Positions 13,811 to 59,985 of a stretch of DNA of 64,000 nt are shown here, in pieces. A program made the position numbers and the translations under genes. The notes beneath the pieces are model-generated. The model made no database searches and had not been told where the DNA came from. It saw nothing but the letters and a program-made list of their open reading frames with translations. Position 1 is the stretch's first letter. Every line of letters begins with the position of its first letter. Source of the DNA: Mytilus californianus. Lineage: Eukaryota. The stretch covers positions 5,084,001 to 5,148,000 of the forward strand of contig NW_026262712.1 of assembly GCF_021869535.1 (NCBI RefSeq), in the 5' to 3' direction.

Positions 13811-14809
13811 ATGGCAAGCGGTAAGTTATCTGTGACTGAACGTTGACAAGCAATTGACATGTCAAATGCCGGTAAGAGCACTAGGAGCATTGGCAACCAT
13901 TTCAATGTTAATCGCACCGTCATTATCAGATTTTTACAACGTCATATTGACACAGGAACTGTAAATGATAGACCAAGGTCCGGGTTTAACTACCCATCGT
14001 GATGACAGACTACTTATTGGTCATGCTAAAGCCAAACCATTTACCCCTACCCCATAGCTTAGACACCACTGGCCTCCAGGTGGTCGTGTTAGTGTTCGAA
14101 CATTGGTCTGTCGACTTCATAGAGGCTACCTAAGAGCACGTCGTGTTGTCAAAAGACGTGCCCTAACAGCCAGGCACCGTATAATCAGGTTTCAAAGGGC
14201 AAATGACCATGGACGATGGAACATGAGAACCTGGCAAAATATGCAGTGGTCAGATGAGAGTTGGTTTCTGTCACGACCAATAGACGGCAGAATACGAGTT
14301 TGGTGGGGAAATAAAACTGCTTATCCTCAAAACAACAATTGCCCAACGACAGCAATCTAAGAGGTTTCTTCTCATACTGTTGTAAGCTGGGTATGCATAT
14401 TTTGCAGGGTAACATGAACAGACAGACATACAGGGTTTTGGTGCTTAGAAACATTGTAGTCCCTCATTTTGAGAATCCCCAACTTGCGTCAAGACCCTCG
14501 TACATGGACAACAACACTAGACCACACAGGGCAAGGATTGTAACCGATTACAAAGATCAAGAAGCCATTGACACTATCTTTTGGCCTTCCATGTCTTCAG
14601 ACCTGAACCTTATCGAACATGTCTGGGAAGCCATTGGCAGAAATCTCAATCGCAGAGATCCACCTTTGCAAAATCTTGGCGATTTAAGAGGAGCAATTGT
14701 TGATGAATGGAATAAATTTGCTCAACTAAAGTTCAGAAGGCTTGTACAGAGTATGAGACGCCGTGTTATGGAACTGTATCGGAGGAGAGGTGGTTACATA
14801 TTCTATTGA
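13811..14809 (+). mobile_element. Tc1/mariner-family transposase relic (frameshifted, stops)
   Basis: N-terminal HTH-like region ending DRPRSG; catalytic motifs WSDES, MDNNTRPH (second D decayed) and WPSMSSDLNLIEHVW across ORFs 14103-14360 and 14339-14809. TIRs not resolved. Confidence 0.9.
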
Positions 14810-21800: not shown

Positions 21801-24394
21801 TTGTCAAAATTGCTGAACTCTCATGGTACTTATTCATGGTATAAATATGCAAAGATTACATCATCCATCCCAGATATTTTAAGATAAAGTCGATAAGTAT
21901 TAGGACATGAATACAATAAAGTCTTTAAAGTCCTTGACTTCAGATAAAAAAAAATGGAAATATAATAAATCATTATGATGAAAATAGTAAATGTTACTTT
22001 ATAAAAATTTAAAACTTAATTGGATACGAAATTTGATTAGCTTCCAATGACTTTTTTTTTACAAAAACAATGCTTCAGTAAGTTGATAATTAGAGACCAT
22101 AACTTATAGAAATAGAAAATGGTCACCATCATAAAATTCATAGAATATGTAGACTGTTCCACTTACTGGACGCTTCCTCCTTGAATACACATGTACAGGA
22201 ACAAAAGCTTAATAGATAATGTAATTGAAAGGTGTTTATCTTCTCCATGTTCTCATAAGCGTATGTCTCTTACCCCAAAACAAAAAGTAAAAGAAATGCT
22301 TAACCCCTATATTATGGAACAAAAAAAGGTTTAAAATATTGGCACCTTCATAAATTAGTCATTTAAGCTGAGGGAAGCACTCTTATATTTTATTTTCCGT
22401 GTGTTCATTTCTTCAAGAATTGTTTTGTCTTTCCTATATTATGTTTCATTTCTGATTTTGTTTTTGTCACACAATAATTTTGCTTATATGAACACAAAGT
22501 TTATTATTTCTATCGAAGCTTATATAGTTTGATTTCCGATCCGAAAAACTTGTGTTTGTATTTTTGCAAATCTACTTTCAAAGTAAATCCACATTTATCG
22601 AACATTTCATTTTATTTCACAGTTTTACAAATTGCTCATTTTAAGGGAGAAATACGCTTGCACAAAACAAACCATCCATTTGAACTAAACTTACTTCCGC
22701 AAACAAAACATTTCGACAATGTGTAAACTGAAAAGTATATTTTTGAACAAAAAAAATCGAGAGAAATAAACAATTCCGCTAATTCTTATTCATTCTAAGT
22801 AGTAAGATATATTATTAAAAAATGCCTTTTAGACTTACACTAATAAGTCTAAGGACATGATAAGACCAAACTTAATCGTTTTAAAAAAAATCATATGGAA
22901 TCAACGGCTTGCAAAATGTAATGATTTGGTAAACAAGAGATGTTAAAGATACCAGAAGGACGTCCAAACTCATCGGTTGATAATAAAATGACAACGTCAT
23001 GGCTAAAAAAGAATCAGACAAATTACCAAACAATACCATCAAAAACATAAGAAAAAACAAAAGGAGGAGCAACACGAATCCCACCAAAAACTGTTGACAA
23101 TTGACAATGAGACAAATACCCATCAGATATCAAATGACTATGCTTGTATCAGCCACATAATACACCATGTAATAGTAATGAATTTAAATTTATCATATAA
23201 TGGAATGGCTTTGCTCATTTTTAAATGCCATACGGTGACCTATAGCTATTAATTTATGTGACATTTGATCTCATTGGCAATCAAACCACATCTTCTTTTT
23301 TAACCAACAGGTCAAAATAAAGAAAAAAAAACAAAACAGGAATTGTTTCACTCTTCATTCTGCTGTGGATATGTCTGCTTCTTATTACTGTTCCGTATGA
23401 TACAGATTTAATAGAACGAATTATGCACTGATTCATGATATAAAGTCGATTGTCTGTTGTTTTGCAACGTAGTTTGATTGTCCGTGTGTTCATATTGTTA
23501 AATGAATAGTATCAACGATATCCGTTGTATGTGATAATAAATATATTGACATTAAACTGCTGAGATGTCTAACGGAAAGTATAATTGGAGGAAAGAGCAT
23601 TTCAGCCTAGAACATTTTTAAAAAAAGTTGTAATTCAGGGTAGGACGTAAGACTTGATCACAAAACAAATTGGATTTCCTTTTCCCTTCGTTGCCGTTAT
23701 CATGCTCTTCTCGGCACAAACACATTAGTTTGGTTATATTAAATGGCGTCATGACCAATATAGGTATTAGGTATTACCGCAGTGTAACAAAATACATATA
23801 TTCCTATGATAATTCTATGTTGTCCTCATTCTGTGAAATCGTTAAAACATGTAATTTTATCGCATGCAAAAAAGAGATACGTGTGGCAAAGTCATCAAAA
23901 TGTTGTTTTTAAGACCAATATTTCTATCTGACATGTCAGACAGATTTCATGTTGAAACTTTGTTATATTTTTTTAAAATACATAACTAAAACAAAAGATC
24001 CGGTATTAGGACAATGCTATAAATCTACATAATTAGTTTTTAATTTTACGACATTATGTTTACAAGCTATTAAGTTGATATTATAAGCACGCAATTTGCT
24101 ACACATATTATTGATACACAACATGTTTTTATGCATTTTTATATATAATACATTGTACATTGATATGTTTGTACTGAATGACTCCTTAGATTGATATGTC
24201 AATTAAATAAGTGACATTGTTAAATTTCACTTCTTAATATGTGTTCGAACTGTTTTATTATATAATCTTTAAATTTGCGGATTTGTTTTTTTTTTGTTAT
24301 CTAGGTATAATGTTATTAACCATATGGAAAGTTTGACCGCAAAAATATGTTTTTCAAAGCTGCAGAATCAGGGCGTATTTTCCAATACGTATAC

Positions 24395-24430
24395 TATATA
24401 ACAAGATAGATTAAAATCAAATTGTCAGTT
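24395..24430 (+). promoter_or_regulatory. Core promoter of peptide gene A: TATA box and initiator
   Basis: TATATAA at 24395-24401 and TCAGTT Inr at 24425-24430 (30-bp spacing), 30 bp upstream of ATG|GTAGGT. Confidence 0.7.
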
Positions 24431-24459: not shown

Positions 24460-24462
24460 ATG
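24460..24462 (+). CDS. Peptide gene A coding exon 1 (ATG only)
   Basis: CAGTAAAATG|GTAGGT; phase 0 matches exon 2, which lacks its own ATG; same design seen in gene B. Confidence 0.7.
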
Positions 24463-25180
24463 GTAGGTATACATTGTTACACATTGCCATGGAGTTGTCA
24501 GTTATTTTTAAATTAATTTCGACAGACGAGTCTGAATTTCATTTTCTGTATCTGTCATCGTTTTTTGTACATTGTCGATTGTTTTTGGTTAGTATATGTA
24601 AGTTAATTTTGACAAAAGAAATAGTTTGACACATTAATTATGAAGTAAAATACAGAAAACCGGCTACAAACGCACCAATAAGAAGGTTGGAACAAACCAT
24701 AAGTTTTTGTTTTAAAGAATATATTTAGTAATGTCCTCCGGAGTTAAGCATTTTTCATACAGTTATTAATGTCTTTAAACATGTTAAAGCAATATGAAAG
24801 TTCAAATTCAATAAAATTTTGGTACATATACATTTTTATTCTGAAAAGAAATCTTTAATTTGTCCTCCAAATTTAGAAGAAATTTACTTATTTTAATTAT
24901 TGGCTTCCCAGACAAAAATTCACCGACATGTTTTTGTATGCAGTGACTGCAACTTTTCTTTCTCGTAAAAATCCGGTGATCGCAATACGCAGGTGCGAAG
25001 GGGAAAACCAAAATGCCAGACAAAAGTCAAACGTAAAGACTGCTGCGTCATCGGAATAAACTGCATCTTAATGTACATGGTTTACATGTGCATACTTCAA
25101 TATCCATGCGTTTTTGTTGATTGTTTAAAAAGGGGACAAAAGGTAAACTTCTGCTTCAAAACATGACAAAAAAAAAAAAA

Positions 25181-25546
25181 TGAAAACAACACGTTTGATA
25201 ATTTCATGCGTCCGAAGCGCTTTTCTGGATTTACCTTCATCAGGAACGCTCAAAGCCAAACATTTGAAATCCAAGGGATGTATAAGTACCACCGAAACAG
25301 TTAAAGAGCTATATGACAAAAATACATAAAACAAGTAGCCAAATTCATCTAAGGTCAACTTTGCCTGAAGGAGTTGAAACCTTAGTTTCTATATAATTTC
25401 AAAATTTATAAACGGACAATTTTAGAGAGGGTTGTTATAAATCATGTCAGTACCGAAGTTCTGACTACTGAGCTGATAATACCCTCGGGGACTGAAAGTC
25501 CACCAGCAGAGGTATCGACCCAGTGATGTAAAAAAGTGAAAACAAC
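25181..25546 (-). mobile_element. Retrozyme-like monomer (356-bp period) in intron 1 of gene A
   Basis: Bounded by TGAAAACAAC direct repeats; near-identical to the 59541-59985 tandem; contains a hammerhead motif. Confidence 0.75.
25206..25251 (-). ncRNA. Minimal type I hammerhead ribozyme
   Basis: Minus strand GAGCGTTC-CTGATGA-AGGTAAATCCA-GAAA-AGCGCT-TC-GGACGCAT: stem I pairing, conserved core, palindromic stem III, UC cleavage site. Confidence 0.85.
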
Positions 25547-27418
25547 AATTTATTGGCTGCCATATTTTCATATCCACACTAAGCGAGTGAAATATTTTAT
25601 TGACGATTATACGATATGGTTACGTACAAAATGATAAAAGTGTGCACAGAAAACTAAGTTTATGATATATGCATGCATTGGTTCAATGATTGGATTATCA
25701 TTTTTGTCACCTTTCAATCGTTTCATATGTCTTAAAGATTTGTTTCAAGTATTTATTTTAAAGCTTCAATTTTTAAGCAATTCTCAAAAAGTGCGTAAAC
25801 CGAATACATAATTTTGCGATCATTTTATTCATATCTAAATATGAACTTAAGACCTAATTAAAAAATAAATTGTTTATTTCCAACTTTTCAAAAGTCTGTT
25901 AGTAAAATATCTGTTTTTAGGTATAAGTTGCAATTTTCTAATATACCGATACCTGTTTGTCAATTTGTCAAATTGGTTGCTAAAATAGTTCCGAAAGTAT
26001 GAAACATGTATTATTAGTTTTAAAGTGTCCAAGAGACATTATACAATATATATTGGGTTAGTAAATTCAATATGGGGTGAGATCAATTGCGATGGCTCGC
26101 TGGGGGGTTATTAAACTTAATGAACTCAACAACAAACATAGTCATAGAAAAGAAACAGCATATTAACACTGGTCACCAGAGTTGATGGTCATTTTGTAAT
26201 TCGGATTGAATTCATATTTTTTAATCAGTTTGTTCCTTTTTTCTATTTTTGACGTTTTTGTGTATTTGTTTTTCTATTTCATGTTTCTCTTTAAACTTGT
26301 ATCTAACTTTTTGAGAAGAATGTATCTATATATCTAAATAAAGCCTACAACATTACACCGGTGTTCATATGTCATAAATCGATAGAGAAAAAAAAACAAA
26401 TCCGGGTTACAAACCAAAACCGAGGGAAATACATCAACTATCAGAGGAAAACAAAGAACAACAGGAAAACCATAGTGCCAAAAAAAAAAAAAAAACGCTA
26501 ATACACATAGAAACGAAGTATGTGATAACAACTGCCATATTTCTGACTCGGTACAGGACATTTTAAAAACAAATGGTGTGATGGACCTGGTTTATAGGCA
26601 TACCAAACCTCCCGCTTTATGAGAATGTTAAAAATATATCGATAACACACAACATGACAGACAAATAATATAATAGTCTTCACAACATGCAAACCGTAGA
26701 ACAACAACGAACATATTCCATCAACGAAAAACAGAACGAGATATTGTTTGTCTTTTAGTTACATGAGTTATGAACAAAATGAATTTAGGATTTTCTTATA
26801 TTGGGTCCATATTTGGCTGGCAAATAGTAAATTACTCAAGCAGAAGCAGTACGATCTTTAAGAACGGACTGTAGCAGCAACATGACTTTTTATTTAAAAT
26901 GATAACTTGTAAACGCTAATACGTTCTGCATGATTTAACGTGAAGTTTATTGAACAATTAATTGCTAGTTTAAAGTCAATATCTAGAAATAATGCGAAAG
27001 AAAGGAAAAATTAATTTAACAATACATATTTTAGGTATATATCTGTTTATTTAGTTAAACCTACTGTAAGTGTATGTGTAATTGTTAGGATCAGCAATTA
27101 TAAGGTCTACAATGAAATTCATATTTTAATGATGTAATGTTGTGGGTGTTTGTCTATCATATTACACCCATGTTAACCTTATATTAACAGACAAAGATGT
27201 ATGATGAGTGTCAACAAGAAAAGTCATTGGATTTATCACGTGAAACCTTACTGTCTGTAGAGTGAATTGACGCCATTATATTATTTGAAATATTTATTTG
27301 ATTAAATTTCAAAAATTTCACTGAGTTTATTATTAAAAAGAAAATGGAGAAAACACAACTTATCTTGTTTTTGTTTCTAGGTAATCAAACATTGATTATG
27401 AGTATTTAATATTTTTAG

Positions 27419-27661
27419 GACTTAAAACTGAGTTGCTTCCTAGTAGTTTTAGCTGTTTGTGCAAGTCTTACTATCGCTCAAAAAAAGACCACCATTACTG
27501 GGGATTTAACCAAGAACAAAGACTCAACAAGAATAGATCTAGGAATATTACACAAACGTAAAAACTTTGAAATTGGAGGATCAGTTTTTGGAGACAATCG
27601 GGGAAATCGAGGTGCAAAAGTAGGCTTTAAATGGAAGTTTGGAAAGAGATCTACAGCATGG
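27419..27661 (+). CDS. Peptide gene A exon 2: signal peptide, 54-aa cationic Gly-rich mature peptide, GKR site
   Basis: TTTTTAG|GAC...TGG|GTATAT; open 81 codons DLKLSCFLVVLAVCASLTIA-QKKTTITGDLTKNKDSTRIDLGILHKRKNFEIGGSVFGDNRGNRGAKVGFKWKF-GKR-STAW; clear homology to 37012-37356. Confidence 0.9.
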
Positions 27662-28289
27662 GTATATATATATATATATTTAGATAACCAATATTTAATT
27701 ATTATTTTTTAATTGGACACTAGATGAAGATGGTTTGCTTAATTAGCTTTGTTTTTAAACCGCCCAAAATACAACACACAAAAAAACTCAAATTTCAAAG
27801 TGAAATTGAGTCCATCCGTCAAAAGAATAAATAAAAAAAAAATTGCAATTTGCCTAAACTATTACTCTTTATGACCTTCTGTTTTGCAGTATTTATGTCT
27901 AGGAATTTTGCGTTTGCTATATTTTCTTTAAAATCAATACGCTTTGGTATAAATGCAAGTCATTGGTAAACACTTAAGATTCACATATCTCATGTTAATG
28001 GATGATTTACCTGTATGCTCATCTGAGATATGTTCAAATAAACATGTAAGACACCACATTTGTAATGTGTCATGTAATACCAAGTGAAGTAAACCTAACA
28101 ATAACTTCCTTCATTATTAACTAACATTATAATTTTACAGTACATGCACTGTAACATGTGTAATGTAGATGTTTAACACAAACATCAGATTCAATTTAAA
28201 CAGATACATGTATATATATCTAAGTCTTATATAAATATACTAAAAAGATTACTTGGCTAACTATTTTTTTTTAATTTACTTTTTCTTAG

Positions 28290-28449
28290 AACGGTGAACA
28301 TTTTGAAGTTCGAGTTATCATAAACCATTGTGACTTCAATGTTTATGATATAAATGAAGACAGTGTTATCACAGTTGATGAGATTTATGAAATATTTCCT
28401 CAAAGAACTGATGCACATAGGTTGTTCAAGGCGCTTGATTCTACATCAG
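28290..28449 (+). CDS. Peptide gene A exon 3: C-terminal extension, EF-hand 1
   Basis: TTCTTAG|AAC...G|GTTAGT, 160 bp phase 0 to 1; NGEHFEVRVIINHCDFNVYDINEDSVITVDEIYEIFPQRTDAHRLFKALDSTS with EF loop DINEDSVITVDE. Confidence 0.88.
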
Positions 28450-29058
28450 GTTAGTATAGTTCTATAATGATTTTGTAGGGGTGATGTTTCTTGAAATTAC
28501 TATTTTTGTTTGGTCAACGACATTATCAAAGAATGTATATTTCAATACCATTTTCTCTATATTTCTCAAACCAAGCAATTCACATTATCATATATAGTAA
28601 GTTATATTGAACAACTGCATGTATATTCAAGAAATGAGAGTACATGTGTTCCATCATGATACTGTTTTTACTAGTCTAATATAGTTTTGTTGTGTCTGTT
28701 TCGTGTGCTGCCTCGTAAGATATTTGTCTTCCGCTAGACATCTTAAACAATACCATTATACATATGGACATTCCGAGGACAATTTTCTTATCTGTAACAT
28801 TAGAAAGCAACATGGGTACTTTTGTTATTGAAATTTGCAACCGTTTCAGATTATTATCAGTTTAGACATATTTTCTGTTTTCAACATAACAATTATGAGC
28901 AGTTTTGTTATCTTCGCTTTTATTTTTATTTTCAAAAAAATTAGGCATGGTTGATTACAACGTTTTATGAAATCATGTTTATGTTTAAATGGTATGAATG
29001 CATATTATACCACAATAAAACAGGTATTAAGATTTTAAGAATGTTTCTTAATTTTCAG

Positions 29059-29144
29059 TTGATGGTAAAGTGACCATTGACGAATTCAAGATGATGGCTC
29101 CACAAGTTATAAAGAAATGTGGATATAGCAAATATTCGTATTAA
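29059..29144 (+). CDS. Peptide gene A exon 4: EF-hand 2 and stop
   Basis: TTTTCAG|TT GAT GGT AAA..., phase 1; (V)DGKVTIDEFKMMAPQVIKKCGYSKYSY*, TAA at 29142-29144. Confidence 0.88.
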
Positions 29145-33369: not shown

Positions 33370-36300
33370 GTCAATGTACGGCCAGATTGAAAACAGTATT
33401 CACCGCATTTCAAATCACATCAATAAATTAAGAAGTCATATTCATGTAACAAACAAAGCTTAATGAATGGCATGGAATCCTAAAAAGGGCAAGGCCGGGT
33501 GGCAATGCTGCTGCAGCCAGATTATTCAATAAAAATGCACGTGGATATCCACAAATATTTTCGTGCAATGCGAGAAATTGACTAACCTGATCTAGATTAT
33601 CTTCTGGTAATACTGTAAGGTCAACAGTGAACGTGAGAGCATTTTCGCTTTCCTTTTCCTGTGACATTACATGAAAAACCCAAAGCCTCATTTATCTGGT
33701 TACATTAACAAAGACAAAGTGTGGTATACCATTTGTAGGACAAACAGGACGGGAGTTTTGTAAACGAACACAGGAACATCTAGACCGCTTCCGAAAACCT
33801 AAGAAATTCAAAAGTATAATTTATCAACATTTAGGTAAACACAACCACAATATTACATTTATTAGATTTCAACCGCTCGAACCGATACAAAAACAACAAG
33901 GGCAATCGCATAAACAATTTGAAGATTCCCGTTAAATTATCGAACTGTCTTGGATTAAACGACTTCAAACAGCTTATCCCCTGGGTCTAAATGACTATAT
34001 ACTTGGACAGGGGAACATATGTACAACTTCTTCTATTGATAATTTGAATAGTATGGATAAAAGACAACGAAATAATAGGTCTCATGGCAAACGTATCAAT
34101 CGAAATCAACGAATTAAACATCGTATAAATTATACACTTGGTAATCTCCTATCTATATTTAAAAACAAAGGTAGGCATCAATTATTATGTAAACTTGGTC
34201 AAATACCAATTAGTAAATTACATGATATTTTCAAGGAGTGTGACACAATCTCTCTCTTCAACCCACTGTATGAATATTCGCATATAATTACAACTTTTTG
34301 CCACCATAGGCTGTTCCAGCATATTGACAAACCTGAAGATCATAAACTTCATTTTCTGAAAATTGAATATATCAGCAGAGGTATTGATTTTATCAACTTA
34401 TCTAGTATATTTAATGACTCTGCCGTTGAAAACTTTATAACTCCCTATTTTGATAACACAGAACCACCTATTATTTCATACACATACAAAAACCCAGCAG
34501 AAGTTTAATTTTTAGTTATACGTCGGTAACATCAGACGTCAATGTAACTTGAAACTGTCAATGGTCGAAGTTTAGATATGTTCCATATGGCCATGTTATT
34601 ACGGGGGACCTCAATATCGCCCAGGACAGAGAGGTTAAAAACTTTTTGAAAAAAGGACCAAAACATCGTCCTTCATCTAAAATAGATTGGAAACAGTGTC
34701 GTCAGGTCATCAAAGATGCTCTTTCCTCAGTTTGTAAAAATTGGTGTAAACGGGAAAAATCTGATAAAAATTTCTTGATTCTTATTTAAATAAATGTATG
34801 AATGTTGTAGATAATAGAATATCACATTTTGAAAATAATTTAGACGTAAATAATAGGTTACATAATACGCTTATTTCCAGAATAAGAAATAAACTTCAAG
34901 AACCTTCAAAGCGGTTTATGTTTGTACCGGCCCGCGCGGCCGATAAAGCAGCCAACAATGTGATGGTGGTATGCCGTAAGTACTACACGGACGTTCATAA
35001 GAATGAAATTTTAAATTCATCTACATTCAAGTCCATGCGCTCCACAGAGAGTCATACAGTTAACAAACATATCATCACCATATCACAGCTTAAGGCTTCT
35101 TCTGGACATTTGAAGGTCCCTTCTATGTTTTGGTTACCTAAATTTCACAAAAAAACAGTAAACTATCGTTTCATCTCGGCCTCTAGTAAGTGTTCTACAA
35201 CTAATCTTTCAGTGCTTTTAACAAGTTCCTTAACTACTATCAAAGAGCTTATCATAAACTTTTGTAATAAAATATATAAAAATAGTGGAATTAACTATTT
35301 TTGGAGTGTAAAAAATTCTTTGGATGTTTTAGGTATATTACGTGCTTGTGATGGTCCTTTTGATTCTGCTGAATGTTTTGACTTTTCTACTCTTTACGCT
35401 ACACTTGCACACAATCTTATCAAACAAAAGTTTTCCTATTTAATTAAATGGTCGTTTGGTAAATCTGAATGCAAATATATTTGCTGCAACTTATTTAAAG
35501 CCTTCTTCTCTAATGAGAAAGGTAGATATGCTAAATATACCTGCTGGAGGTGTGATGAGATGATTGAAGCTGCTAATTGTCTCCTTGATAATATTTATGT
35601 ACGTTTCGGCAACAAAGTTTATATAATTGCGCCCCTTTAATAACAGACTTTTTTTGTACTGTTATTAATCACAGTTTATTTCCATGCTCATTAAAGACCC
35701 GTCTAAATTGCATTTAATTGATAAATTCAACAACACTTACTGTTTTCGTTAAATAATCAAGAATTTTCTCAATATACTGCCGAAATTTACCCAAAGGAGC
35801 TTACTTTAAATAAATCAAAATTAAACGATAACAACTGTCCTTTCCCAGATTTAGATATTTTGGTTTTGAACGGGAAACTCCACACTAAAATTTACGACAA
35901 AAGGGATAATTTTTCGTTCCCTATCAGTAATTTTTCCTTTTTGGATGATGATGTTCCTTTGGCACCATCTTACGGTGTTTATATTTCACAACTCGTTCGC
36001 TATGCCCGTGTCTGTTGTGACGTTTTTGATTTTAACGAACGTAATCTTTGTATTACTGGTAAATTATTAAGCCAGGGATTTCGTTACCACAAATGACTTA
36101 AAACCTTTACTAAACTCTTCCGTAAATATATAGATTTGATTTTAAAGTTTGGTTGTACCTGTAGAAAACGTAATTCAAACGGAATAGTACATCCTCATTT
36201 TTACGGAAATGTTGTTTACCGTGCCCGGAAATTTAGAAACGATCCTGGTAAACTTATCGATTCTTTAAATACACTTATTCTAAAAGGTTACCAATTCAAC

Positions 36301-36680
36301 ACTGTTATTAGATCATTGAATATTGTTTTTATTGGTATTAATATTGATTTTGTTATCAGTGAATTAAACGCAAACTAAATATTAATGCTATATACATATA
36401 CACATTCATGGATCTACAATCTGTCGATACCTGTTTCTTGGCATTGCTCAAGGTCATGTTTTTCTCTGACTGTTTATGACGTTTTTACACTTAATCCATT
36501 GGATGTTGGATGTGTACTGATTGATAATTTAGTCTTAGATGCATGATTTTTTTATTAGTTGTTAGTGGCTTTGAACTAGCTGCCAGTAACTGCGAGTACT
36601 CTCAGATCTGTACTTAGTGTCTTTTTGTTGTTGGGATGTACAAGTACCCGTCCACGTCCACTTGTATTTGTATTTATTTA
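33370..36680 (+). mobile_element. Naiad-clade Penelope-like retroelement (N-terminal GIY-YIG, CxC linker, C-terminal RT), decayed, with Sec-type TGA codons
   Basis: One frame 33450-34508 gives SCNARN*LT*SRL...CDIT*KTQSLIYLVTLTKTKCGIPFVGQTGR...QEH...QH...WIKRLQTAYPLGLN; then T*NC...GHVITGDL, ADKAANN, FWLPKFHK, FDFSTLY, YDKRDNFSFPI. Boundaries approximate. Confidence 0.9.
36465..36539 (+). promoter_or_regulatory. SECIS-like element in the Naiad 3' UTR
   Basis: ATGAC (36476) / TGAT (36522) core, about 10-bp helix II with TACAC/GTGTA (two mismatches), unpaired AA at 36493 then TCCA/TGGA mini-stem, helix I TCT-GACT/AGTC-TT-AGA. Folded by eye. Confidence 0.65.
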
Positions 36681-37011: not shown

Positions 37012-37356
37012 TTAAAATAGCAGAGCAGTGGGTGTTTTCTTTCTTCCAAAGTCCCACTTAAAACCCGCAAGCGCACCTCGATCTCCCCGGTTGTCCCCAA
37101 AAATTGATAAACCTAATTGAAGGTTTTTACGTTTGTGTGATACACCAAGACTTCCCCCTCGATGTCCTTTTGATGTACCAAATCCTCCTGCGTTGAACCC
37201 CCAATTCCTATGTCGATGAGAAAGGCTGAGATCTGCTCGTGTTCCAATATCTTCACTACGAGTCAACTTTCCTCTAAAGATTGGTTTATGTTTCTGAGCA
37301 ACAAGATAATGTGTGCAAAGAGCTATAACCACAAGTAAATAACTTGATTTTATATC
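37012..37356 (-). CDS. Peptide gene B exon 2: signal peptide, 83-aa cationic Gly-rich peptide, GRKK, short tail (no EF-hand)
   Basis: CTTTTTAG|GAT ATA AAA...; DIKSSYLLVVIALCTHYLVA-QKHKPIFRGKLTRSEDIGTRADLSLSHRHRNWGFNAGGFGTSKGHRGGSLGVSHKRKNLQLGLSIFGDNRGDRGALAGFKWDF-GRKK-TPTALLF*; overlaps track ORF 37012-37332. Confidence 0.9.
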   Translation of the reverse strand, partial: DIKSSYLLVVIALCTHYLVAQKHKPIFRGKLTRSEDIGTRADLSLSHRHRNWGFNAGGFGTSKGHRGGSLGVSHKRKNLQLGLSIFGDNRGDRGALAGFKWDFGRKKTPTALLF

Positions 37357-38802: not shown

Positions 38803-40554
38803 GTGTTGGCATTTAAAAAGTCTTCCTTGTTGTGAGTCTTAGTATTAAACAATTGTGGTCAAAGTTTTCGTTTATAAAAATGATTAATTCTACACAATAA
38901 AAACTATAATTAAAATTATGGTACATTCCATAATACGTTTCACCGCATTTAGTTTGTTTACGATGTCAATGTGTAATATAACCTTTTAATGAAAATATGA
39001 TGTCTTTATTCAGTACACCATTTGAAGGTTTTTCATATAATAAATGCATAACAACATGTTGATTATCAATAATGTAAGATTACATTTACGTGCGATGAAT
39101 ATTTCTCTCGGCTTTGTAAGTATTATATTATAAAAACCACAGTATTTTTGTCATTTTGTAGTTTATCAAATTTTAAATAGAACGACTCTTTTCCTTTAAC
39201 AACAGTATACACTCTTTAAAAGTTTGAATGTCCTTTTGGTATTATTCGCCTCTCTTTTGAAATTAACTTCTAAACAAAAGGGTCCAAAATGTACTCTATT
39301 AGTGCAATTCCTTCATCGAAAACCACATCATAAATGACATTTTACGTTTTCTGTCACATGCATTACTTATTATGTGCGATACGCCGCACGACATACTTTA
39401 AAAAGACGCTAATATTACGGTTCAAAATGATGTATCTATAAATTTATTTGATCTTCCAAGAGGATGTTGAACCTTTATTGTACAATCCTTTGCTTCAAAT
39501 TCTGTATGCATATTTATGCAGGATGTCAACCGTGGATGACCGCATGTAATCCAATTATTAAATGTTATAATAAATCATTTACTTAATAACTAAAATAACT
39601 CCTTCGATTATATGTTTTAAACCACACATGGTCGCTGAACAAAAATATCAATATACAATATATCACAATCGCCGTAACTCATGCACAACCGTTCTGCCTT
39701 TTGTATTGTTCACATAACAATAAAATTGAGAATGGAAATGGGGAATGTGCCAAAGAGTCAACAACCCGAGCAAAAAGCAGATAAAACAAGACGAAGGCCA
39801 CCAATGGGTCTTCAACACAGCGAGAAAACCCGGCACCCAGAGGTGGGGTTTAGCTGGCCCTGAAAAAATATGAACAGTTTTAAATATCGTAAACAACTAT
39901 AGGCCTAAACATTTGTGGATAATTTACCTTATCTGGTAAGAATATATATCAGGTGTCCACACTTCGCTAAAATAATATGACAACAATTTGGCATTTAGAT
40001 TTTAGGGTGATATTCAAATATTTTGTGAGATTCTACTTAAGGATGCACTTCTATGAGGTTTAGGAGTGTGTGTCAAATGTTCGGACTGCTTAGATATTTT
40101 TCTACGATTCAGGGAAAACTAGTTTGCCCCATAACACCCATTTTCCTTTGTATATAAGACTTCAATAGCTTATAAAAGGTCATTTACCAAAATTTAAGCA
40201 GATTCTTGATTTCTTTTCTATCGATTTGAGACCAAAATAATACTAATGCAAATATAAGTTTAAAGTCAGAGTCAGCCTTTTCCCGCCATTTTTTAAAATC
40301 TAATATCTCGAAAAGGAGCTCCATAACCTATTAATATTGTTAGCTTATATTGTTCCTTAACTAATAATTTTTCGACTTATTGAATCAATTTTTATTTCTT
40401 GATTTTTTTTTAATTTCACCTAAGTTCATCCTTTAGTTAATAATGTCTTTGAACAGATTCCAGTGTCAGGTGCTGAAATTCTATAAAATGTTAACCGTAT
40501 GTGTGATTTACATCTACAATTATGTATAGACCAGTTCTTTATTCGTTTGTATCT

Positions 40555-40683
40555 TCACTTGAAGCCTAGTTTGGCACCTCGATTTCTCCGATTGTCTCCG
40601 AAAACTTATCCTCCAAATTCAAAGTTTTTACGTTGGTGTGATATACTCAAACTCCATCCTCGGTGTCATCTTGAAGTACCGAA
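40555..40683 (-). pseudogene. Third peptide paralog, internal exon-2 fragment only
   Basis: FGTSR*HRGWSLSISHQRKNFEFGG*VFGDNRRNRGAKLGFK*; aligns to gene B module 1/2 and gene A C-terminus; flanked by sequence homologous to gene A intron 1 (27095) and to 31012. Confidence 0.85.
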
Positions 40684-41134
40684 GCTGATCCTATAAATCC
40701 TATATATGCTTACAGTTGGCAAAACTCAATTATACCGAAAGTATTGTTAAATTAATGTTCCTTTCTCTCGCATTAATGCTAGATAGTTGCTCAAACATAG
40801 CAAACGTATGTTTTCTAAACTTAAATCATACAGAATGTATTGTCGTTAAAAAGTTATCATTTTGAATTAAAATGCATGTAGCTGCTACAGTACGTTCATA
40901 AAGATCGTACTGCTTCAGATAACTTACTATTTACCAGCCGAATATACACCCACTATAAGAAAATTCATTTTTTGTTCATAACTAGAAGACAAACAATATC
41001 ACAACAAATAGACAAAAGCCACAAAACAATACAAAATACAAATTCAAACCGAATACAAAAATAAACATCAACTTAGGTGACCAGTGTTGATATACTGTTT
41101 CTTTTCTACGACTTTGTTTGCTGTTGAGTTCATT

Positions 41135-41718: not shown

Positions 41719-42400
41719 GTTAACGCCCCGGTGATCCGTCGCATTCGATCTCACCCCATATGGAATTTACTGACCCCATATATATATCGTATTAGGTCAC
41801 TAGAACACTATTTAACTAATAAAACAGGTTCATACTTTAGAACTATTTTACCTAACAATCAATTTGACAAATTGACAAACAGGTATCGGTAAATTTAAAA
41901 CGAATACACCACAAAGATATTTTACCAACAGATTTTTGAAAAGTTGGAAAAAATCAATATATTTTTAAGTTAGATCTTAGGTTGATATTTAAATATGAAT
42001 GACATGATCGTAAACTGAGGTCTGTATGTATTCATTTTATGCACTTTTGGGGAAATTGCCCTAAAAAAGATGCTGTTAAATAGGTACGTGAGAAAAAACT
42101 TTAACACATACATACATGTATGAAAAATGCAGTACTCTGGAGAACATTACTCAACATATTCTTTTTAAATTCTAATGGTTTTTCCAACCTTCTTATTGGT
42201 GCATTTGTAATAAATGTGTCAAACTATTTATTTTGTCAAAATGAACTTACATAGAATAACCAAAATCCATCGACCACCGTGTACAGAAAATGACGAAAAA
42301 TACCGAAAAGGACATTCAGACACATCAGTCGAAATAACTGAGAACCCCATGGCAATGTGTAAAAATGTATAAATTTCAATATATGAACAACAATACCTAC

Positions 42401-42468
42401 CATTTTACTGTGTAGTTTTCTCTAGAAAGTTGAATTTACAGTTTGATTCGAATCTATCTTATTATATA
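42401..42468 (-). promoter_or_regulatory. Duplicate of gene A promoter and ATG exon (belongs to the pseudogene)
   Basis: Minus strand TATATAA 42468-42462 and ACACAGTAAAATG|GTAGGT (ATG 42403-42401); reverse-complement match to 24330-24470; Inr altered. Confidence 0.75.
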
Positions 42469-43779
42469 GCGTAATGATTAGAATATCCGTCCTGATTCTG
42501 CAGCTTTGAATACAATATTTTTGCGGTCATACTTTCATATGATTAATAAGCGTCATACTTAGAAAAATAACAAAAAAATCAAATCCGCAACTTGAAAGAT
42601 TATATGATAAAACAGTTCGACCACATACGATGGAGAGAAATTTCACAATGTCAATGTTTAATATGACATATCAGTCTGAAAGAGTCATTAAGTACAAAAC
42701 ATCAATTAATTGTATATCAAAAATGCATAAAAAACATGGTGTGTATCAATAATATGTGTAGCAAATTACGTGATTAGAATATCACCATAAACGTTTGTAA
42801 ACACTATGTTGTAAAATAAAAACTAATTATGTAAATTTATAACATTGTCATCACACCGGATCTTTTCTTTTAATTATGTATTTCACAAATATAACAAAGC
42901 TTTAACATGGAATCTGACATGTCAGATAAATATATTGGTCTAAGAAACAACATTTTAATGACTTTTGCCGCATGTATTTCGTTTTTGCATGTATTATATA
43001 TATATATAGATAAGAATTTATGCCTTTAATGATTAAACAAAATAAGAAAGAACACGGAAATGTATGTATCTTCCAAACACTGGCGTTATCCCTAAATTGA
43101 CCATGACGCCATTGAAAACGATCTAACGAAATATTCTTTTTTGTGTCGCGAAAAACACGATGACTGCCACTAAGAAAAAAGAAAATTAAGGCTTTTTACT
43201 GCGCATATATTTATTTGCTCCATTAATAACTTTTATTACTTCTAGACTAAAATGTAAGATATGTAATTTTCTTTCATTTCTAGTTTCCATTATTCCTCTT
43301 ATCAATTTGATATCCAAATGTTCAACATTCTGATATGCACAAAGTGGAGAGTTGATTCCAAGTGTGCAATTTCAAATCATAAATTCAATAAAAAAAAAAG
43401 ACGACATAGTCAAAAAGAAAAAAGACAAACAGGAAAACAATAATAACAGAATGTTACACAATAAACTATTGATTATTAACACGAACCACTGACAATAAAG
43501 CGGCGTGGCACAACAAAAGACAAAAAACTATATACAATGGACCAGTGTAGACTTGGTTCAACTAAATTTTTATCATACGTAACAGTGGTAAGAATCGGAC
43601 ATGACTCAAAAAGAATTCAAAGAAAATAGCAAAAATACCCAACTCCAAGGAAAATTCTAAACCGCAAAGTCCATTTTAAAATAGAAAAACAAAAGCCCAA
43701 ACATAGATTCAAAGGATAGATTCAAATAGTTGACAGTTAAACAAATTCTGTTTTATGTTTAACATAACCACGCTGTTAG

Positions 43780-47639: not shown

Positions 47640-49375
47640 GGGATAATTTTGCTTTGATAAGCTATGTATCTGCGAAACAAAACAAATATTTCTTTGGAGT
47701 CCTGTCGAAAACAAACTTACTAACAATAAAATGATACTGTTGATGGTGAGCTTACCTCTTAAAAATCAATTTATAAAGCCTTTAAATAGATGGCGAATAA
47801 CATTATACATGTTACACGCGTATATTGTGAAATCTGTCTTCGGAGAACAATATCTGGATTATCCTGAGCAGATTGGAGGCGGGATATCGAATATTATTCA
47901 CAATGCCACAGGAAACATCACTTATGGTATTATACTACCAACTAGGAGTTACTTTCTTAATCATTGCTATTTGCCTACGGTTGATACGATTGTGCATGTA
48001 TTTTCCCCAAAGACTAATAAATTTTGGAACTGCTTTTCTTATTGTTGTGAATGCATTGGCTGGCATACTTGCATCGGTGTTTCAGAATCATGTTTGGTTT
48101 AATTTGTATCATTTTCCACTTACAATTATAACTTATTACTTATTCCGCACAGACCTGTTTTTATATCTTACCTCACTGAAAATATACTTCAATCTATATT
48201 GCCAGAGTATATCATTAAATGTAATTAACAGCATAATTATATATACTTTGGATGCATCAGAGAAACGCGAGGTCCATTGTTTAATAGAAAATACAATAAA
48301 TGATATTCGACAAGGTTATGGAAGCATAATGAACACAGAAATTGTTTTCGTTTTACTTCTTTATGCAATTGTGTTGGCAATTTCTATCCCATTATTTTTT
48401 ATACAGCAGAAACATTTTCCAAGCTGGAACAATTTTTATGAAAACTATCACCATAATGTGTATGACTTGTATAGGCACAATAGCCTTTATAACAATGATT
48501 TCTCACATAGGTTCTATTTTTCCGAAAGCAATGTTATGGTTTTTACGTGGGCGAAACTACAAAATCAATACCTCAGAGCTCTTAATGCCTGCCAATGTCT
48601 TGGGTATCTTAGCAATCCAGTCATTTGATAGTGATGTAAAATTCAATGGTATGATGATGTGTTTTGGAATTTTTCTTGTTGCTAGTTCTGTTCTAGAACA
48701 AGTACACACGTTTGCTAATTTGTTTTTACTGGAACTTGGAGCATCGGGAGCTGTAAGTTTAAAAACAGGCAAAGCTGTTACAATTACCATTTTATTAATT
48801 CCCTATTTGGGTGGTTGTGAAATTTTATTAATTTGACTTTGATTAAGCCATAATATGGTTTCTTGTAGCGACTTCAGCTTGGATATCTGTGCGCATTGAA
48901 TCAGTAGGGTCTCTGTCAGTTTACCTTTTGTTGGTATTGGATAGCTTTAAATCTGAATCCATTGAAAAAATTAGATGAAATTATGTATGGCGTTGGTGCG
49001 GCCATCGGAATAGTTCATATAACGTTTGTACTTCTTCAAATATGCTGTCTCACTTGGAAAATAACCACGGTTCAATGGAGCTGGATTAATTGTATTATAT
49101 TATCAATACTCATTTACCATACTTATGAGCGGGTAACTTATTAATGGAACGAGTTTCAAAGGCGTCGAACGGCGGATCAAAGACTGTCATTCTTACCAAA
49201 TGCAACACAAGAACAATTACATGTTTTCAACGATGTTTGTGCCATCTGTCTTCGCAATATGACGTCCGCTAAGATTACTCCTTGTAATCATTATGCCCAC
49301 GGATTATGTTTAAAAAAGTGGTCGTACATAAAAGAAACGTGTCCAAAGTGCAATGTTATAATTAAAACTTATTGA
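47640..49375 (+). pseudogene. Intronless RNF145/RNF139(TRC8)-like multi-TM RING-H2 E3 ligase, frameshifted
   Basis: Hydrophobic ORFs 47731-48102, 47873-48628, 48342-48836, 48962-49144 tile by frameshifts; C-terminus ATQEQLHVFNDVCAICLRNMTSAKITPCNHYAHGLCLKKWSYIKETCPKC (intact C3H2C3), stop at 49373-49375. Confidence 0.8.
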
Positions 49376-51760: not shown

Positions 51761-52127
51761 TCAGTGTATTTATCTTTTTTGAGAAATTGCCTAACAAATG
51801 ATGATGTTTATAAGGTACGTGATACAAAACTTAAACACATAAATACCCGGATGAAAAATCATTTAAACCGAAGGACATTACTCGAAAGTTTTTATTAAAA
51901 ATTCGAAAATTTGTTTCCAGCTTTCTTATTGATGCATTTATCTGGATTTTACTTTTATCAAAATGAACTTAAATAGAACAAGCAAGACCCATCGACAGTG
52001 TTACAAATAATTGACGAATGAAACCAAAGGAACATTCAAACACATATGTCGACATTTAACTACAAATAAACTGAAAAACGCAAGGGCAATATGTAAAAAT
52101 GCGTAAACTTAATCATGTGAAAAAATA

Positions 52128-52140
52128 CCTTCCATTTTAC
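52128..52140 (-). pseudogene. Dead copy of the peptide-gene ATG exon
   Basis: Minus strand GTAAAATG|GAAGGT (ATG 52135-52133): donor GT changed to GA; TATA box not retained. Confidence 0.6.
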
Positions 52141-52694
52141 GTATTGTTTTCGCTTGAAATGTACACTGATAATTTTATTCGAATTTATCTTGTAAAATTT
52201 TGTTAAGATTCGCAAATCGGTATTAATTTAAGTTTTACATAAAATATGTGTGCGGTCAAGCTTCCCATCTCGTTTATAAACGTCAGACCTAGATTACAAA
52301 AAATAAAATCATCCGCAAACTAGAAGATTATATGATAAAACAGTTTGACCACATAATTTTAAAGGAAATTTCACATTATCAATATGTTATATGACATATA
52401 CAAGACTGAATGAGTCATTCAGTACATAACCTCAATGTATTTCATATAAAAAAATGCATAAAAAAGATACTGTATATACATAGTATGTGTAGCTAATTTC
52501 GTGCTTAGAATATCATCGTAAAAGATTGTAAACATAATGTCGTAAAATCAAAACTAATTATGTAAATTTATAGTTGTATGTTCGTCCTCACACCGGATCT
52601 TTTCTTTTAATTACGTATTTCAAAGGAATAACAAAATTTTAACATGGAATCTGACATTTCTGATAAATATATTGTTCTAAGAAACAACATTTTA

Positions 52695-55185
52695 TGGTCA
52701 TCGTCATTATACATCACCTACTTTGCATGATGTCTCTATTAATGACTTGCTGCCATTTATACAAAAGCCGTTAGGTATTCATCACATTCGCACGAAACTG
52801 TATTCATTACCCCTTTCAAAACTCTATTTTCTGTTCAATTTATGTTTGGAAACCACTGTTACAAACCCTCATTCAAACCAATACAAACTAACAGCTATCA
52901 TTTCAGATATTGCAAGTCACAGATTTTTCATGTTTGCATTGGAAAAGATGAAAAAGAGAAAAGATCTTTTCTTAAACTTTCCTTTGCCAAAAAAGGTCTC
53001 GATGGCGTCAACTTAGGCAATATCCTTCATCATAAATTAGTTCAGTCGAAAATACCTCCTTATTTTAAAAATCAGTCTGTACCAATAATTTCTCATGCTT
53101 ATACCAAACCAATTGCAACTAAAATTTTCAATTACAAACACGTTTTGCAGGATCTCAACATTGACGACTTCAAGTTTAAACCTCCTGATTGCACCTGTGC
53201 TAGTTCCCAATTCACATATAATCCGGCTGGCCACGTTATTACCGGAGACCTCAACATTGTCAATAACACGTCCCTGCGAAATTCGTTATCCAAAGGTCCG
53301 AAATATCGTGAGCCTAAATCCATCAATTGGAAATACAACTTCAAAATACTGATGGATTCAGTCGAGGATTATGCCAGACAATGGGCTAAACGCGAAAAGA
53401 AGACGTAGATACTCTATCCGAATGGATTAAGGCTGTGAGGTCGTTGATACAAATCCGAATTAAGAAACTAAATGGGCCTATCAATACACAAGCTACGTCA
53501 ATTTTTAAAGACCCAAATGTTGCAAAACACTTGTCCTACCTCCATGACCAATATGTTGTTGTCCCCGCAGATAAAGCCCCAAACAACATCGTTTTTGTGT
53601 GTAAATATCATTACATAAACTGATTGATAAATGAATTAGGTATTGACAATTCACTTGGAAACTCAACATATACCCTCACGACACTAACCAAAGAGGAAAT
53701 CCTGGATAATCATAGGTCTGTTCTATGTTCCTTTGGCATGTCAACCAAAGATGAAGAACTGGATCTTCCATCACTGTATTGTATACCTAAATTACATAAG
53801 TGTCATAACACACAACGGCATATTGCTGGATCTTCCAAGTGCTCCACGAAACCTCTTTCTAAATTATTAACATCTATTTTACCAGCAATCAAAGCCGGGC
53901 TCCAAAGCTATTGTGAAACTGCCTATTCTAAGGGTGGCGTGAATCAGATGTGGATACTAAAAAATTCCAAAGATCTTTTAGAGTACATACAATCTAAGAC
54001 TCTCTCATCTTGAGATTTGACTTTTCTTCACTTTACACAAGTATTCCCCATTCCAAACTTAAAGACAAACTGAAAGAGTTGGTATTACTTTGTTTCATTA
54101 AAAAGAATGGCGAACGTAGATACAAGTATCTTGTCCTGGGGAGGGATAAATCCTACTTTGTAAAGAATCATTATGATTCAAACAAAAAATTCTCTGAAAC
54201 TGACATTATCAAGATGCTTGATTTCTTGATTGACAACATATTTGTTACGTTTGGAGGACGTGTTTTTCAAAAGACTGTCGGAATTCCAATGGGAACCAAT
54301 TGTGCCCTTCTTCTTGCCAACTTGTTTCTTTATTATTATGAGGCTGACTTCATACAGGAACTTCTTAGGAAGAAAGATAAGAAGTTAGCAATATCCTTTA
54401 ACTTTACTTTCCGCTATATAGATGATGTTCTCTCACTAAATAATACAAAATTTGGTGACTATGTTGAATGAATCTATCCAATCCAACTAAAGATAAAGGA
54501 TACTACAGATACAGTTAAGTCTGCCTCGTATCTTGACTTACATCTAGAAAATGACAGTGAGGGTCGGTTGAAAACAAAACTTTACGACAAACGAGATGAT
54601 TTCAGCTTCCCAATTGTGAACTTTCCATTTCTATGTAGCAACATTCCAGCAGCGCCTGCATACGGAGCATATATCTCCCAATTGATACGATATTCCCGGG
54701 CTTGTATTTCCTATCATGATATCCTTGATAGAGGGTTGCTGCTCACAAGGAAGCTATTAAACCAAGAGTTCCAAATGGTGAAGTTGAAATCATCCCTTCG
54801 TAAATTTTACGGACGCCATCACGAGTTGGTTGACCGTTATGGAATAACCGTTTCACAGATGATATCGGATATGTTCCTTATGTCGTAACTATAATACCCT
54901 TCCCTTTTCACGAATGTGACCTACAGAATTAGACTATTTACCGGATTTGTAATAACATAAACAACACGACGGGTGCCACATGTGGAGCAGGATCTGCTTA
55001 CCCTTCCGGAGCACCTGATATCACCCCCAGTTTTTGGTGGGGTTCGTGTTGCTTAGTCTTTAGTTTTCTATGTTGTGTCATCTGTACTATCATTTGTCTG
55101 TTTGTCTTTTTATTTTTGGCCATGGCGTTGTCAGTTTGTTTTCGATCTATGAGTTTGACTGTCCTTCTGGTATCTGTCGTCCCTC
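52695..55185 (+). mobile_element. 5'-truncated Naiad retroelement (CxC linker and RT) with 5-bp TSD
   Basis: PPDCTCASS, GHVITGDL, VPADKAPNN, FDFSSLY, GIPMGTNCA, FRYIDDVL, YDKRDDF; TTTTA duplicated at 52690-52694 and 55186-55190; empty sites at about 42950 and 23890. Confidence 0.92.
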
Positions 55186-58100: not shown

Positions 58101-59540
58101 ATAGAGGGTATCTTAGAATTATAAGTTTAAACTGTTTGAACCCTTTGATCAAAACGATTACTAGAAATTTCTATTGGGAGATTTTCCAATGAAGCTACCT
58201 TGGCTTTAACCGAAAACATGACTTTTCTTGCTTTTTTTCGCTAGGACTCCTAAACATGAAATCAGGTTACCATTGCTCTGAATAAGAATTCCTATCACTC
58301 GCATGTCTTTTTCATAGTTGTTTGAAGATTATTTTAGACATATTTACGAGGTTTTATATGCTGAAAACTCAACAAACATTTAATTGAGAGAAAAATTGTT
58401 AAAAGTAGAAATGCACGACCAAAACGTGCAATTCGATTTTTTTATTCAGTAATATAGGTTATATGGAAGTGCAGGGATATACTTAGATACCGGTGTACAA
58501 TTTTACTTCCAGTCAATTAATAGTTTGGTGGAAAACTCTTGTTGAATTTATCTGCACAAAACAAAACATGCAAAAAAAAGCTATGGTGGACCTTTATACC
58601 ATAGAATTATTAACTTACCTATTTCGAATCTATCTTCACTTTTATTTATTATAAATCCGGAAAAAAATAGTTCGTAGTATTTTTGAACGAAAAACCTCGT
58701 GAATAAAGTAATGACCGTCATATCTTAATGCTTTAATTAGAGGTGAACGTAATTTTTCCTGTTTCACTCACAGGATTGAAATTTAAACGTTAACAAATCT
58801 TACGGGAAATTAATAATTTAAGGAGGAAGTCAGGTAAAATTTTGTAAATCCGGAATTTAAAATTGAAATTACAAATGAGAAGTTCAAAAACTTTTACACT
58901 ATAAAATTTTAACACTATTCAATTTGCTTAATTTGTTGATTTAGTATAATTAAGATCTCATAAACATAGCTTATCAACTTGTTATTTTAATGATATGAAA
59001 GTTATTTGCCATTTGACGTTAAAGAAAATCTATTCATTTATTCGTTAATTTGAAAGGAGTATTTCATTTTACCCGTCTCTATAACTCATCAAAAGGATGC
59101 TTCTAGTTATGCCAAACCTTGCTTTTAAACTTACCTAAAAATCAGATCAGAAAATTGAAACATTCCATGTTTTTTTTTTTTTATGATTCCACGACCTTAC
59201 CTCCCTATACAAATAAATATGAAATATGTACAGCATGCAGAAACATGTACAGGCAGTTCAAAATAAAGTATTATTACGTTGAACATTACAAAAAGTAATA
59301 GTGTTGTAGTATAGTATTTCAAAATGCAAAATGAACAACACTTTTTTTCTAAATGAAGGCACTGCTTCGTGAAAAAAATTTAAATCAAAATCAAAACATT
59401 ATACCTATTCTATGACAAAACTAACAAACTAACAAAGTTGATATAACAATACTATCGCTGTTCAATATTAGCACTTTTGCACATTTGCTGTCTTTAAACT
59501 ACAACTGCATTGAAGATATTAAACAAAGTTTTTAAAAAAT

Positions 59541-59985
59541 TGGAAACAACACGTTTTATAATTTCATGCGTCCGAAGCGCTTTTCTGGATTTACCTTCAT
59601 CAGGAACGCTCAAAGCCAAACATTTGAAATCCGAGGGATGTATAAGTACCGAAACAGTTGAAGAGCTATATAACAAAAATACCTAAAACAAATAGCCAAA
59701 TTCATCTAAGGTCAACTTTGCCTGAGGGAGTTGAAACCTTAGTTTCTTTATAATTTCAAAATTTAACAACGGACAATTTTAGAAAGGTTTGTTATAAATC
59801 ATGTCAGTACCGAAGTACTGACTACTGAGCTGATGATACCCTCGGGGACTGATATTCCACCAGCAGAGGTATCGACCCAATGATGTAAAAAATTGGAAAA
59901 AACACGTTTAATAATTTCATGCGTCCGAAGCGCTTTTCTGGATTTACCTTCATCAGGAACGCTCAAAGCCAAACATTTGAAATTT
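59541..59985 (-). mobile_element. Tandem retrozyme-like repeat (353-bp period) with two hammerhead ribozymes
   Basis: Hammerhead motifs at 59566-59611 and 59919-59964, same sequence as 25206-25251. Confidence 0.85.

Follow-up and report, generated by a model that had tools for sequence, protein, structure and literature searches.

The stretch of DNA analysed here, called the window throughout, comprises 64,000 nucleotides (nt) of the mussel Mytilus californianus (NCBI RefSeq assembly GCF_021869535.1, contig NW_026262712.1, positions 5,084,001 to 5,148,000 of the forward strand). It contains the gene LOC127705592, which we call gene A, and further intact and decayed copies of its exons, among them the peptide exon of a second gene, gene B. 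Gene A encodes a precursor in which a signal peptide is followed by a cationic, Gly-rich peptide free of Cys, a dibasic site and an acidic tail with an EF-hand pair. It is a functional gene of a mussel-restricted, tandemly duplicating family, for which a role in host defence is proposed below. An earlier reading of the window, here the original prediction, had outlined the same precursor and suggested a new family of antimicrobial peptides (AMPs). The parts of gene A, in window positions with lengths in amino acids (aa), are as follows.

24395-24401, + strand: TATA-like box TATATAA, about 60 nt 5' of the ATG, in a block of promoter and 5' untranslated region (5'UTR) kept in three paralog copies
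24460-24462, + strand: end of exon 1, the start codon alone, followed by the donor GTAGGT; the RefSeq coding sequence (CDS) begins at the same base
27419-27478, + strand: rest of the signal peptide, residues 2-21, with a hydrophobic core and T-I-A at -3 to -1; cleavage site by the -3/-1 rule
27479-27640, + strand: predicted 54-aa mature peptide, residues 22-75, made up of an N-terminal strand/hairpin, one 27-aa Gly-rich module and the terminal strand V-G-F-K-W-K-F
27641-27649, + strand: G-K-R, a dibasic site for processing whose Gly may serve amidation; a dibasic site is found family-wide
27650-27661, + strand: tail residues 1-4 (STAW) up to the exon 2 donor; this splice point is kept in the relatives L001 and L005-L008, and the intron-less contig L004 confirms it
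28290-28449, + strand: exon 3, with Cys96 (28329-28331), the loop of EF-hand 1 (28347-28382) and the start of EF-hand 2
29059-29144, + strand: exon 4, which completes EF-hand loop 2 (to 29084) and adds the exiting helix, Cys156 (29118-29120) and the stop codon

The four exons of gene A (24460-24462, 27419-27661, 28290-28449 and 29059-29144) have AG/GT at all boundaries and splice to a CDS of 492 nt, which translates into 163 aa. This product is letter-identical to P0064, the RefSeq 'uncharacterized protein LOC127705592 [Mytilus californianus]', and the annotated CDS in GCA_021869535.1 (JAKFGE010000006.1) covers the same 4685 bases, window 24460-29144. The four-exon, 163-aa precursor of the original prediction, built by hand, therefore equals a model made independently, and its 21-aa signal peptide, 54-aa peptide, GKR and 85-aa tail all hold on recount. 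The unusual first coding exon, which consists of the ATG alone, is validated because the same block of promoter, 5'UTR and ATG with the donor GTAGGT heads a paralog, LOC127723525, on another chromosome; the layout of exon 1, in which CAGTAAAATG is followed directly by GTAGGT, recurs in that locus (L010) and at window 42403. The product of gene A is predicted to enter the secretory pathway. An alternative first exon at 27344 (MEKTQ...) was rejected, being out of frame with exon 2; it is used by the M. coruscus gene model P0065, whose start at the out-of-frame upstream ATG equivalent to window 27344 looks like an annotation error.

A phmmer search with exon 2 against 1.84 billion cluster representatives gave 19 matches, 17 of which we read as true and all of these mussel or mussel-like; the bottom two, much longer than the rest, are bacterial repeat proteins and are not counted among the members. 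The members comprise M. coruscus models named 'EF-hand domain-containing', VDI05149 of M. galloprovincialis, and many unspliced open reading frame (ORF) calls in metagenome and Logan assemblies. A full-length match to a family already described, which the original prediction had named as one result that would tell against it, was not found by sequence methods, phmmer having reached family members and the two bacterial repeat proteins. LOC127723525 is a second intact paralog, with two modules and the same exon-1 block. The same three coding exons recur in two divergent lineages (L001; L005-L008), in places as tandem copies. Because the DNA of these loci resembles the window within exons only, if at all, we take them to come from other genera. 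In a divergent relative, contig L004 joins the same exons with no intron across either junction, and for this reason is taken to be derived from mRNA. Bases 1-754 of that contig are a hairpin chimera, in which the 5' part of the transcript appears in reverse complement as bases 1-245, the source of the otherwise missing signal peptide and N-terminal strand. The M. coruscus model P0020 fuses two tandem family genes, with the terminal strand and G-K-R skipped, and this too looks like an annotation error.

The ratio of nonsynonymous to synonymous substitution rates (dN/dS), obtained by the Nei-Gojobori method for gene A and LOC127723525, is 0.14 in the signal peptide, 0.12 in the mature peptide (dS 0.61), 0.21 in the tail (dS 0.30) and 0.15 overall (dS 0.43); intron 2 is about 73% identical between the two genes. 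Because dN/dS is low in both peptide and tail, selection maintains both halves of the protein. The family lies far beyond chance, since its exon structure is shared by paralogs and orthologs, a relative provides a spliced, cDNA-like contig, and dN/dS between paralogs is 0.15. At the level of sequence, purifying selection is shown, as are splicing and transcription in a relative.

The mature peptide of gene A begins with Gln and contains 13 K/R against 5 D/E, 8 Gly (14.8%), no Cys and no Pro, with an isoelectric point (pI) of 10.5. Across the family mature regions measured, Gly makes up 14.8-21.7%, pI is 10-11 and Cys is absent, except for one in P0001. Alignments reveal a common plan, consisting of an N-terminal strand (..KKTT.TGD.TK....R.D), then n Gly-rich hairpin modules of 27 residues each (.G.SHKR.N.E.GGS.FGDNRG.RG..), and then a terminal strand (.[VIL]G[FVL][KR][WF][KR]F). 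There is one module in gene A, two in LOC127723525 and gene B, and three in P0001, P0016 and P0017. Five residues, one Ser, one Asp and three Gly, do not vary in the family alignment, and 16 of the 17 sequences have the final Phe. A dibasic site after the terminal strand is kept in every lineage, as GKR, RR-S or KKR-S. The Gly ahead of it is confined to Mytilus members, and amidation is therefore lineage-specific at best. A second, internal basic stretch, HKRK, had been expected to yield a shorter product. In divergent members it is replaced by NKQE, HTTD or YTQE, and because it is not conserved the shorter product is disfavoured and the whole meander, rather than a fragment of it, is argued to be the product.

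The tail of gene A (85 aa, 14 D/E, 9 K/R, two Cys, pI 5.0) falls just short of the Pfam threshold, with EF-hand_6 at 23.2 bits vs a cutoff of 25, and the tails of the homologs P0028 (EF-hand_1, 32 bits) and P0020 pass the EF-hand threshold. The acidic 85-aa extension with two EF-hand-like loops and two Cys that the original prediction described is borne out by these matches and by the counts. Loop 1 (DINEDSVITVDE) is canonical save for a Ser as its sixth residue. In loop 2, Mytilus has one inserted residue and P0028 keeps the canonical length; the latter protein also weakly matches SPARC_Ca_bdg. We regard the tail as an EF-hand pair with predicted Ca2+ binding, and its two conserved Cys possibly form one disulfide. 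The tail is not present in every member. VDI05149 of M. galloprovincialis (P0025) ends like gene B, and because both keep the peptide without an EF-hand tail, the peptide is the part that is always retained; the shared ending also indicates that the loss of the tail in gene B is old and tolerated.

A similar order of parts is known from the antifungal mytimycin (PMC8004829): its precursor starts with a signal peptide and a 54-aa peptide with 12 Cys, and the dibasic site is followed by a 75-aa EF-hand extension without an assigned role. In the alignment of that paper, some isoforms carry the same G-K-R-S junction. Both are products of mytilids in which a signal peptide is followed by a cationic mature peptide of about 54 aa, a dibasic site and, at the C-terminus, an acidic extension that holds an EF-hand pair, and to this extent the parallel with mytimycin drawn at the outset holds. 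The two differ in that the mature mytimycin has 12 Cys (array 10-12) and the gene A peptide none, in that exon 1 of mytimycin is non-coding whereas that of gene A ends with the ATG, and in the tail, which in gene A has two Cys, a shorter inter-loop linker and the insertion in loop 2. The tail of gene A is 31% identical to that of M. californianus mytimycin over 52 aa (BLASTP, pairwise E 0.001), the level of generic EF-hands, and a database homology search with the tail alone returned family members and no mytimycin, with too few shared words for retrieval. A modular EF-hand carrier common to both families, as first suggested, is thus not demonstrated. Myticalins, which are gill-expressed linear AMPs of mussels, resemble gene A in being cationic and Cys-free and in their layout of signal, mature peptide, dibasic site (often preceded by Gly) and anionic pro-region. 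They are, however, short, linear and Pro/Arg(/Tyr/Trp)-rich, unlike the Gly-rich, 54-aa gene A peptide with its predicted beta-sheet and folded EF-hand tail. With 0 Cys, 0 Pro and 8 Gly, the peptide is neither a mytimycin nor a myticalin, as had been proposed.

With a probability of roughly one half, we read gene A as encoding a host-defence pro-protein whose EF-hand pro-region would be cut away from a cationic beta-meander polypeptide of attacin/gloverin type, by analogy with insect proteins of this class. A cut at the conserved dibasic site would, most likely, release the cationic peptide and the acidic EF-hand pair as two pieces. The former would be Cys-free and Gly-rich with a pI of about 10.5, and would consist of an N-terminal strand, n beta-hairpin modules and an amphipathic strand ending in Phe, a residue that is probably amidated in Mytilus; we infer the processing, the pyroglutamate (pGlu) and the beta-sheet fold of this piece. 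It is taken to be the effector, working as the attacin/gloverin-class Gly-rich proteins of insects do, and would bind and perturb the bacterial, especially the Gram-negative, envelope. An antimicrobial function of this kind is plausible. The EF-hand piece may act as a pro-region that neutralises charge, responds to Ca2+ and serves folding, sorting or storage, a role also proposed in the case of mytimycin.

The insect proteins in question (attacin, sarcotoxin II and diptericin, gloverin, hymenoptaecin and acaloleptin, which is of coleoptericin type) are likewise secreted, cationic and Cys-free, with 15-22% Gly and repeated Gly-rich units, and the predicted antiparallel beta-meander of the mussel peptide superposes on their AlphaFold database (AFDB) and ESM Atlas models with template modelling (TM) scores of 0.54-0.79. 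They differ in having no detectable sequence homology to the mussel family and in coming from arthropods rather than a mollusc. The mussel module is 27 aa long with its own motif, the mussel peptide is without the attacin N-domain, and the insect precursors are without an EF-hand tail. Fold searches were made with the AlphaFold2 (AF2) model of a three-module relative, that of gene A being too poor; the relative is modelled as an eight-stranded antiparallel meander (predicted local distance difference test score, pLDDT, 68.6; predicted TM score 0.54). Among the Swiss-Prot AlphaFold models, the top 22 Foldseek matches include acaloleptin A (TM 0.73), gloverin (0.57/0.52), sarcotoxin II-1 and II-2, hymenoptaecin and attacin-B. 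In the PDB, porins (TM 0.63), VDAC and BamA were found; among AFDB clusters, the M. coruscus homolog came first and bacterial outer-membrane protein (OMP) beta-barrel domains next. The shape search of the ESM Atlas gave a porin cluster at TM 0.87, an autotransporter cluster at 0.80 and an Attacin_C/Gloverin cluster at 0.79. By language-model features of the mature region, the nearest named clusters are gloverin/attacin, attacin, hymenoptaecin-like and diptericin, followed by phage and bacterial OMP-like barrels. The impression of an attacin/diptericin-like peptide in the original prediction finds a weak echo in both kinds of search. These weak, independent signals agree that the modelled peptide somewhat resembles both the attacin/gloverin class and outer-membrane beta-strands, a resemblance that does not establish homology.

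Strands of OMP beta-barrels (porins, autotransporter/YadA-type anchors, VDAC) share with the peptide an alternation of hydrophobic and polar residues, Gly turns and a C-terminal aromatic residue, and the porin and autotransporter clusters of the ESM Atlas are its best shape matches overall. The mussel protein, in contrast, is a secreted animal product with a signal peptide and a propeptide, and its profile matches all lie below curated thresholds; YadA_anchor is weakly matched by 7 of 19 members, at best with E 0.0045 and 17.5 bits vs a cutoff of 22.7, i.e. sub-threshold. A profile of the mature region run against all PDB sequences gave two matches at chance level (E about 0.4-0.5). The OMP resemblance is probably a matter of convergent amphipathic beta-strand chemistry. 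UniRef has automatically named P0025 (A0A8B6CIN9, VDI05149) an 'Attacin C-terminal domain-containing protein', and this name was not reproduced, Attacin_C giving no match at E<=10 in current Pfam.

Several observations weigh against an attacin-like defence effector. Neither Attacin_C (PF03769) nor Gloverin (PF10793) of Pfam was matched at E<=10 when the 19 aligned members, and singly some extra proteins, were run through hmmscan, and the phmmer search with exon 2 found no arthropod protein among the 1.84 billion representatives. The AF2 model of the 163-aa gene A protein itself is poor (pLDDT 52.5, four low-confidence beta-strands in the peptide). The Swiss-Prot fold matches are all weak (E 0.03-0.2), with predictions on both sides of the comparison, and BamA, porins and VDAC rank beside the insect proteins, so that generic beta-meanders score equally. 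Language-model scores of 0.84-0.89 lie under the 0.9 line at which the tool speaks of a lead only. AMPs evolve fast, and purifying selection as strong as that on the peptide is less typical of them; pGlu and amidation are hallmarks of regulatory peptides also.

The last of these points bears on a different reading, a secreted regulatory or hormone-like precursor in which dibasic cleavage, amidation and pGlu would yield a signalling peptide, with the EF-hand piece co-released or serving as a sorting domain. G-K-R together with an N-terminal Gln are classic neuropeptide marks, and purifying selection on the peptide is strong. Yet the products are long (54-110 aa), the number of 27-aa modules varies within and between species, and neither the amidation Gly nor the N-terminal Gln is conserved beyond Mytilus; the family is mussel-restricted and tandemly duplicated with pseudogenes, whereas bilaterian neuropeptide families are usually single genes that are broadly conserved. 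We consider a regulatory peptide unlikely. The EF-hand pair may instead be the working part of the protein, which would be secreted to bind Ca2+ in shell matrix, byssus or extrapallial fluid; the Gly-rich region would then be structural or targeting and cleavage unneeded. The purifying selection on the tail (omega 0.21), the two conserved Cys, which suggest a disulfide-stabilised extracellular EF-hand, the weak SPARC_Ca_bdg match in P0028 and the Gly-rich regions commonly held by matrix proteins all fit this view. It accords poorly with gene B and its M. galloprovincialis counterpart, which lost the EF-hand exons and kept an intact, conserved peptide exon, with the dibasic site conserved between the two parts in all lineages, and with the degenerate loop 2 of Mytilus, and we find it about as improbable as a hormone precursor.

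That gene A is a prediction artefact or a decaying pseudogene without a product might be suspected from an exon 1 of ATG alone and from a model as plainly mis-fused as P0020. It is effectively refuted by the identical RefSeq model, by the ATG exon with GTAGGT and the TATA block kept in three copies on two chromosomes, by an exon structure that is conserved across lineages and that the spliced contig confirms, and by the dN/dS of 0.15 between paralogs.

A bolder version of the defence reading starts from the last strand of the peptide, with its pattern polar-x-G-x-x-aromatic-x-Phe, in which G is invariant and the terminal F nearly so; we presume this pattern to be like the C-terminal targeting signal of bacterial OMPs. 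The family would then be the mussel counterpart of the arthropod attacin/gloverin class, evolved or anciently shared. Its last strand would mimic the OMP targeting signal, and the peptide would engage the outer membrane or the beta-barrel assembly machinery rather than simply lysing, with the same kind of EF-hand exon pair having been recruited by two unrelated mussel effector families, that of gene A and mytimycin. As a whole we hold this extended scheme to be quite doubtful, and put it forward as speculation.

Almost all AMPs so far described from bivalves are Cys-rich. In the literature searched for motifs, accessions, Gly-rich mussel AMPs and attacin or gloverin in mussels or bivalves, no published description of the gene A family was found, and Kireta et al. 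(2025, PMC12294457) state that bivalves have no known Gly-rich AMP. The family is real and undescribed. Of the undescribed effector family first proposed, the lack of a published description stands, with the qualification that the proteins are already public as uncharacterised predictions. If the peptide is a defence effector, it fills the gap of Gly-rich AMPs in bivalves and extends the attacin/gloverin-like structural class beyond arthropods, by convergence or deep homology. It would also supply a second, independent EF-hand pro-region, and the role of this domain in mytimycin would become testable by comparison, with gene B, a natural tail-less paralog, as a built-in control. With their varying count, the 27-residue hairpin modules form a simple natural series on which studies of structure and activity could draw.

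The window contains the following paralog copies, of which the two peptide exons were located by a tblastn search with the gene A precursor.

37012-37356, - strand: gene B peptide exon, two modules, intact; its frame runs past the donor site of gene A to a stop seven residues after G-R-K-K, without an EF-hand tail
40528-40691, - strand: dead peptide exon, interrupted by in-frame stops, between the gene B peptide exon and the exon-1 copy at 42 kb
42100-42859, - strand: duplicate of the promoter, the ATG-only exon 1 and the start of intron 1, with the ATG at 42403-42401 and an intact donor
51949-52573, - strand: third, degenerate copy of promoter and exon 1, donor lost (ATGGAA)

The exon-1 copy at 42401-42403 probably belongs to gene B as its first exon, and the tandem copies and pseudogene debris fit birth-and-death evolution. 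Just 5' of the TATA box, a block of about 40 nt (GCTGCAG.ATCAGG....ATTTTCCAAT-like) occurs at window 24340-24400, at 42460-42520 (-) and at 1390-1450 of L010; it is conserved among the promoters of these three paralogs and is a candidate for a regulatory element that they share. A scan of these three promoters for kappaB-like motifs found nothing consistent and no clean kappaB site.

Intron 1 of gene A contains a repeat of about 370 bp (25174-25547) that recurs with 93% identity 34 kb away at 59534-59904. The second copy is itself partly tandem (59514-59630 / 59867-59983), and the repeat is probably a short mobile element. Transposon debris elsewhere in the window consists of a DDE_3 transposase fragment (14339-14809), a weak RVT_1 fragment (54010-54471) and a retroelement between genes A and B (33450-36540); the ORFs at 34044-35640 gave no Pfam match. 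The ORF at 48342-48836 (+) matches the TRC8 N-terminal domain above cutoff (E 5e-7), and may be an exon of a gene for an RNF139/TRC8-like membrane E3 ligase.

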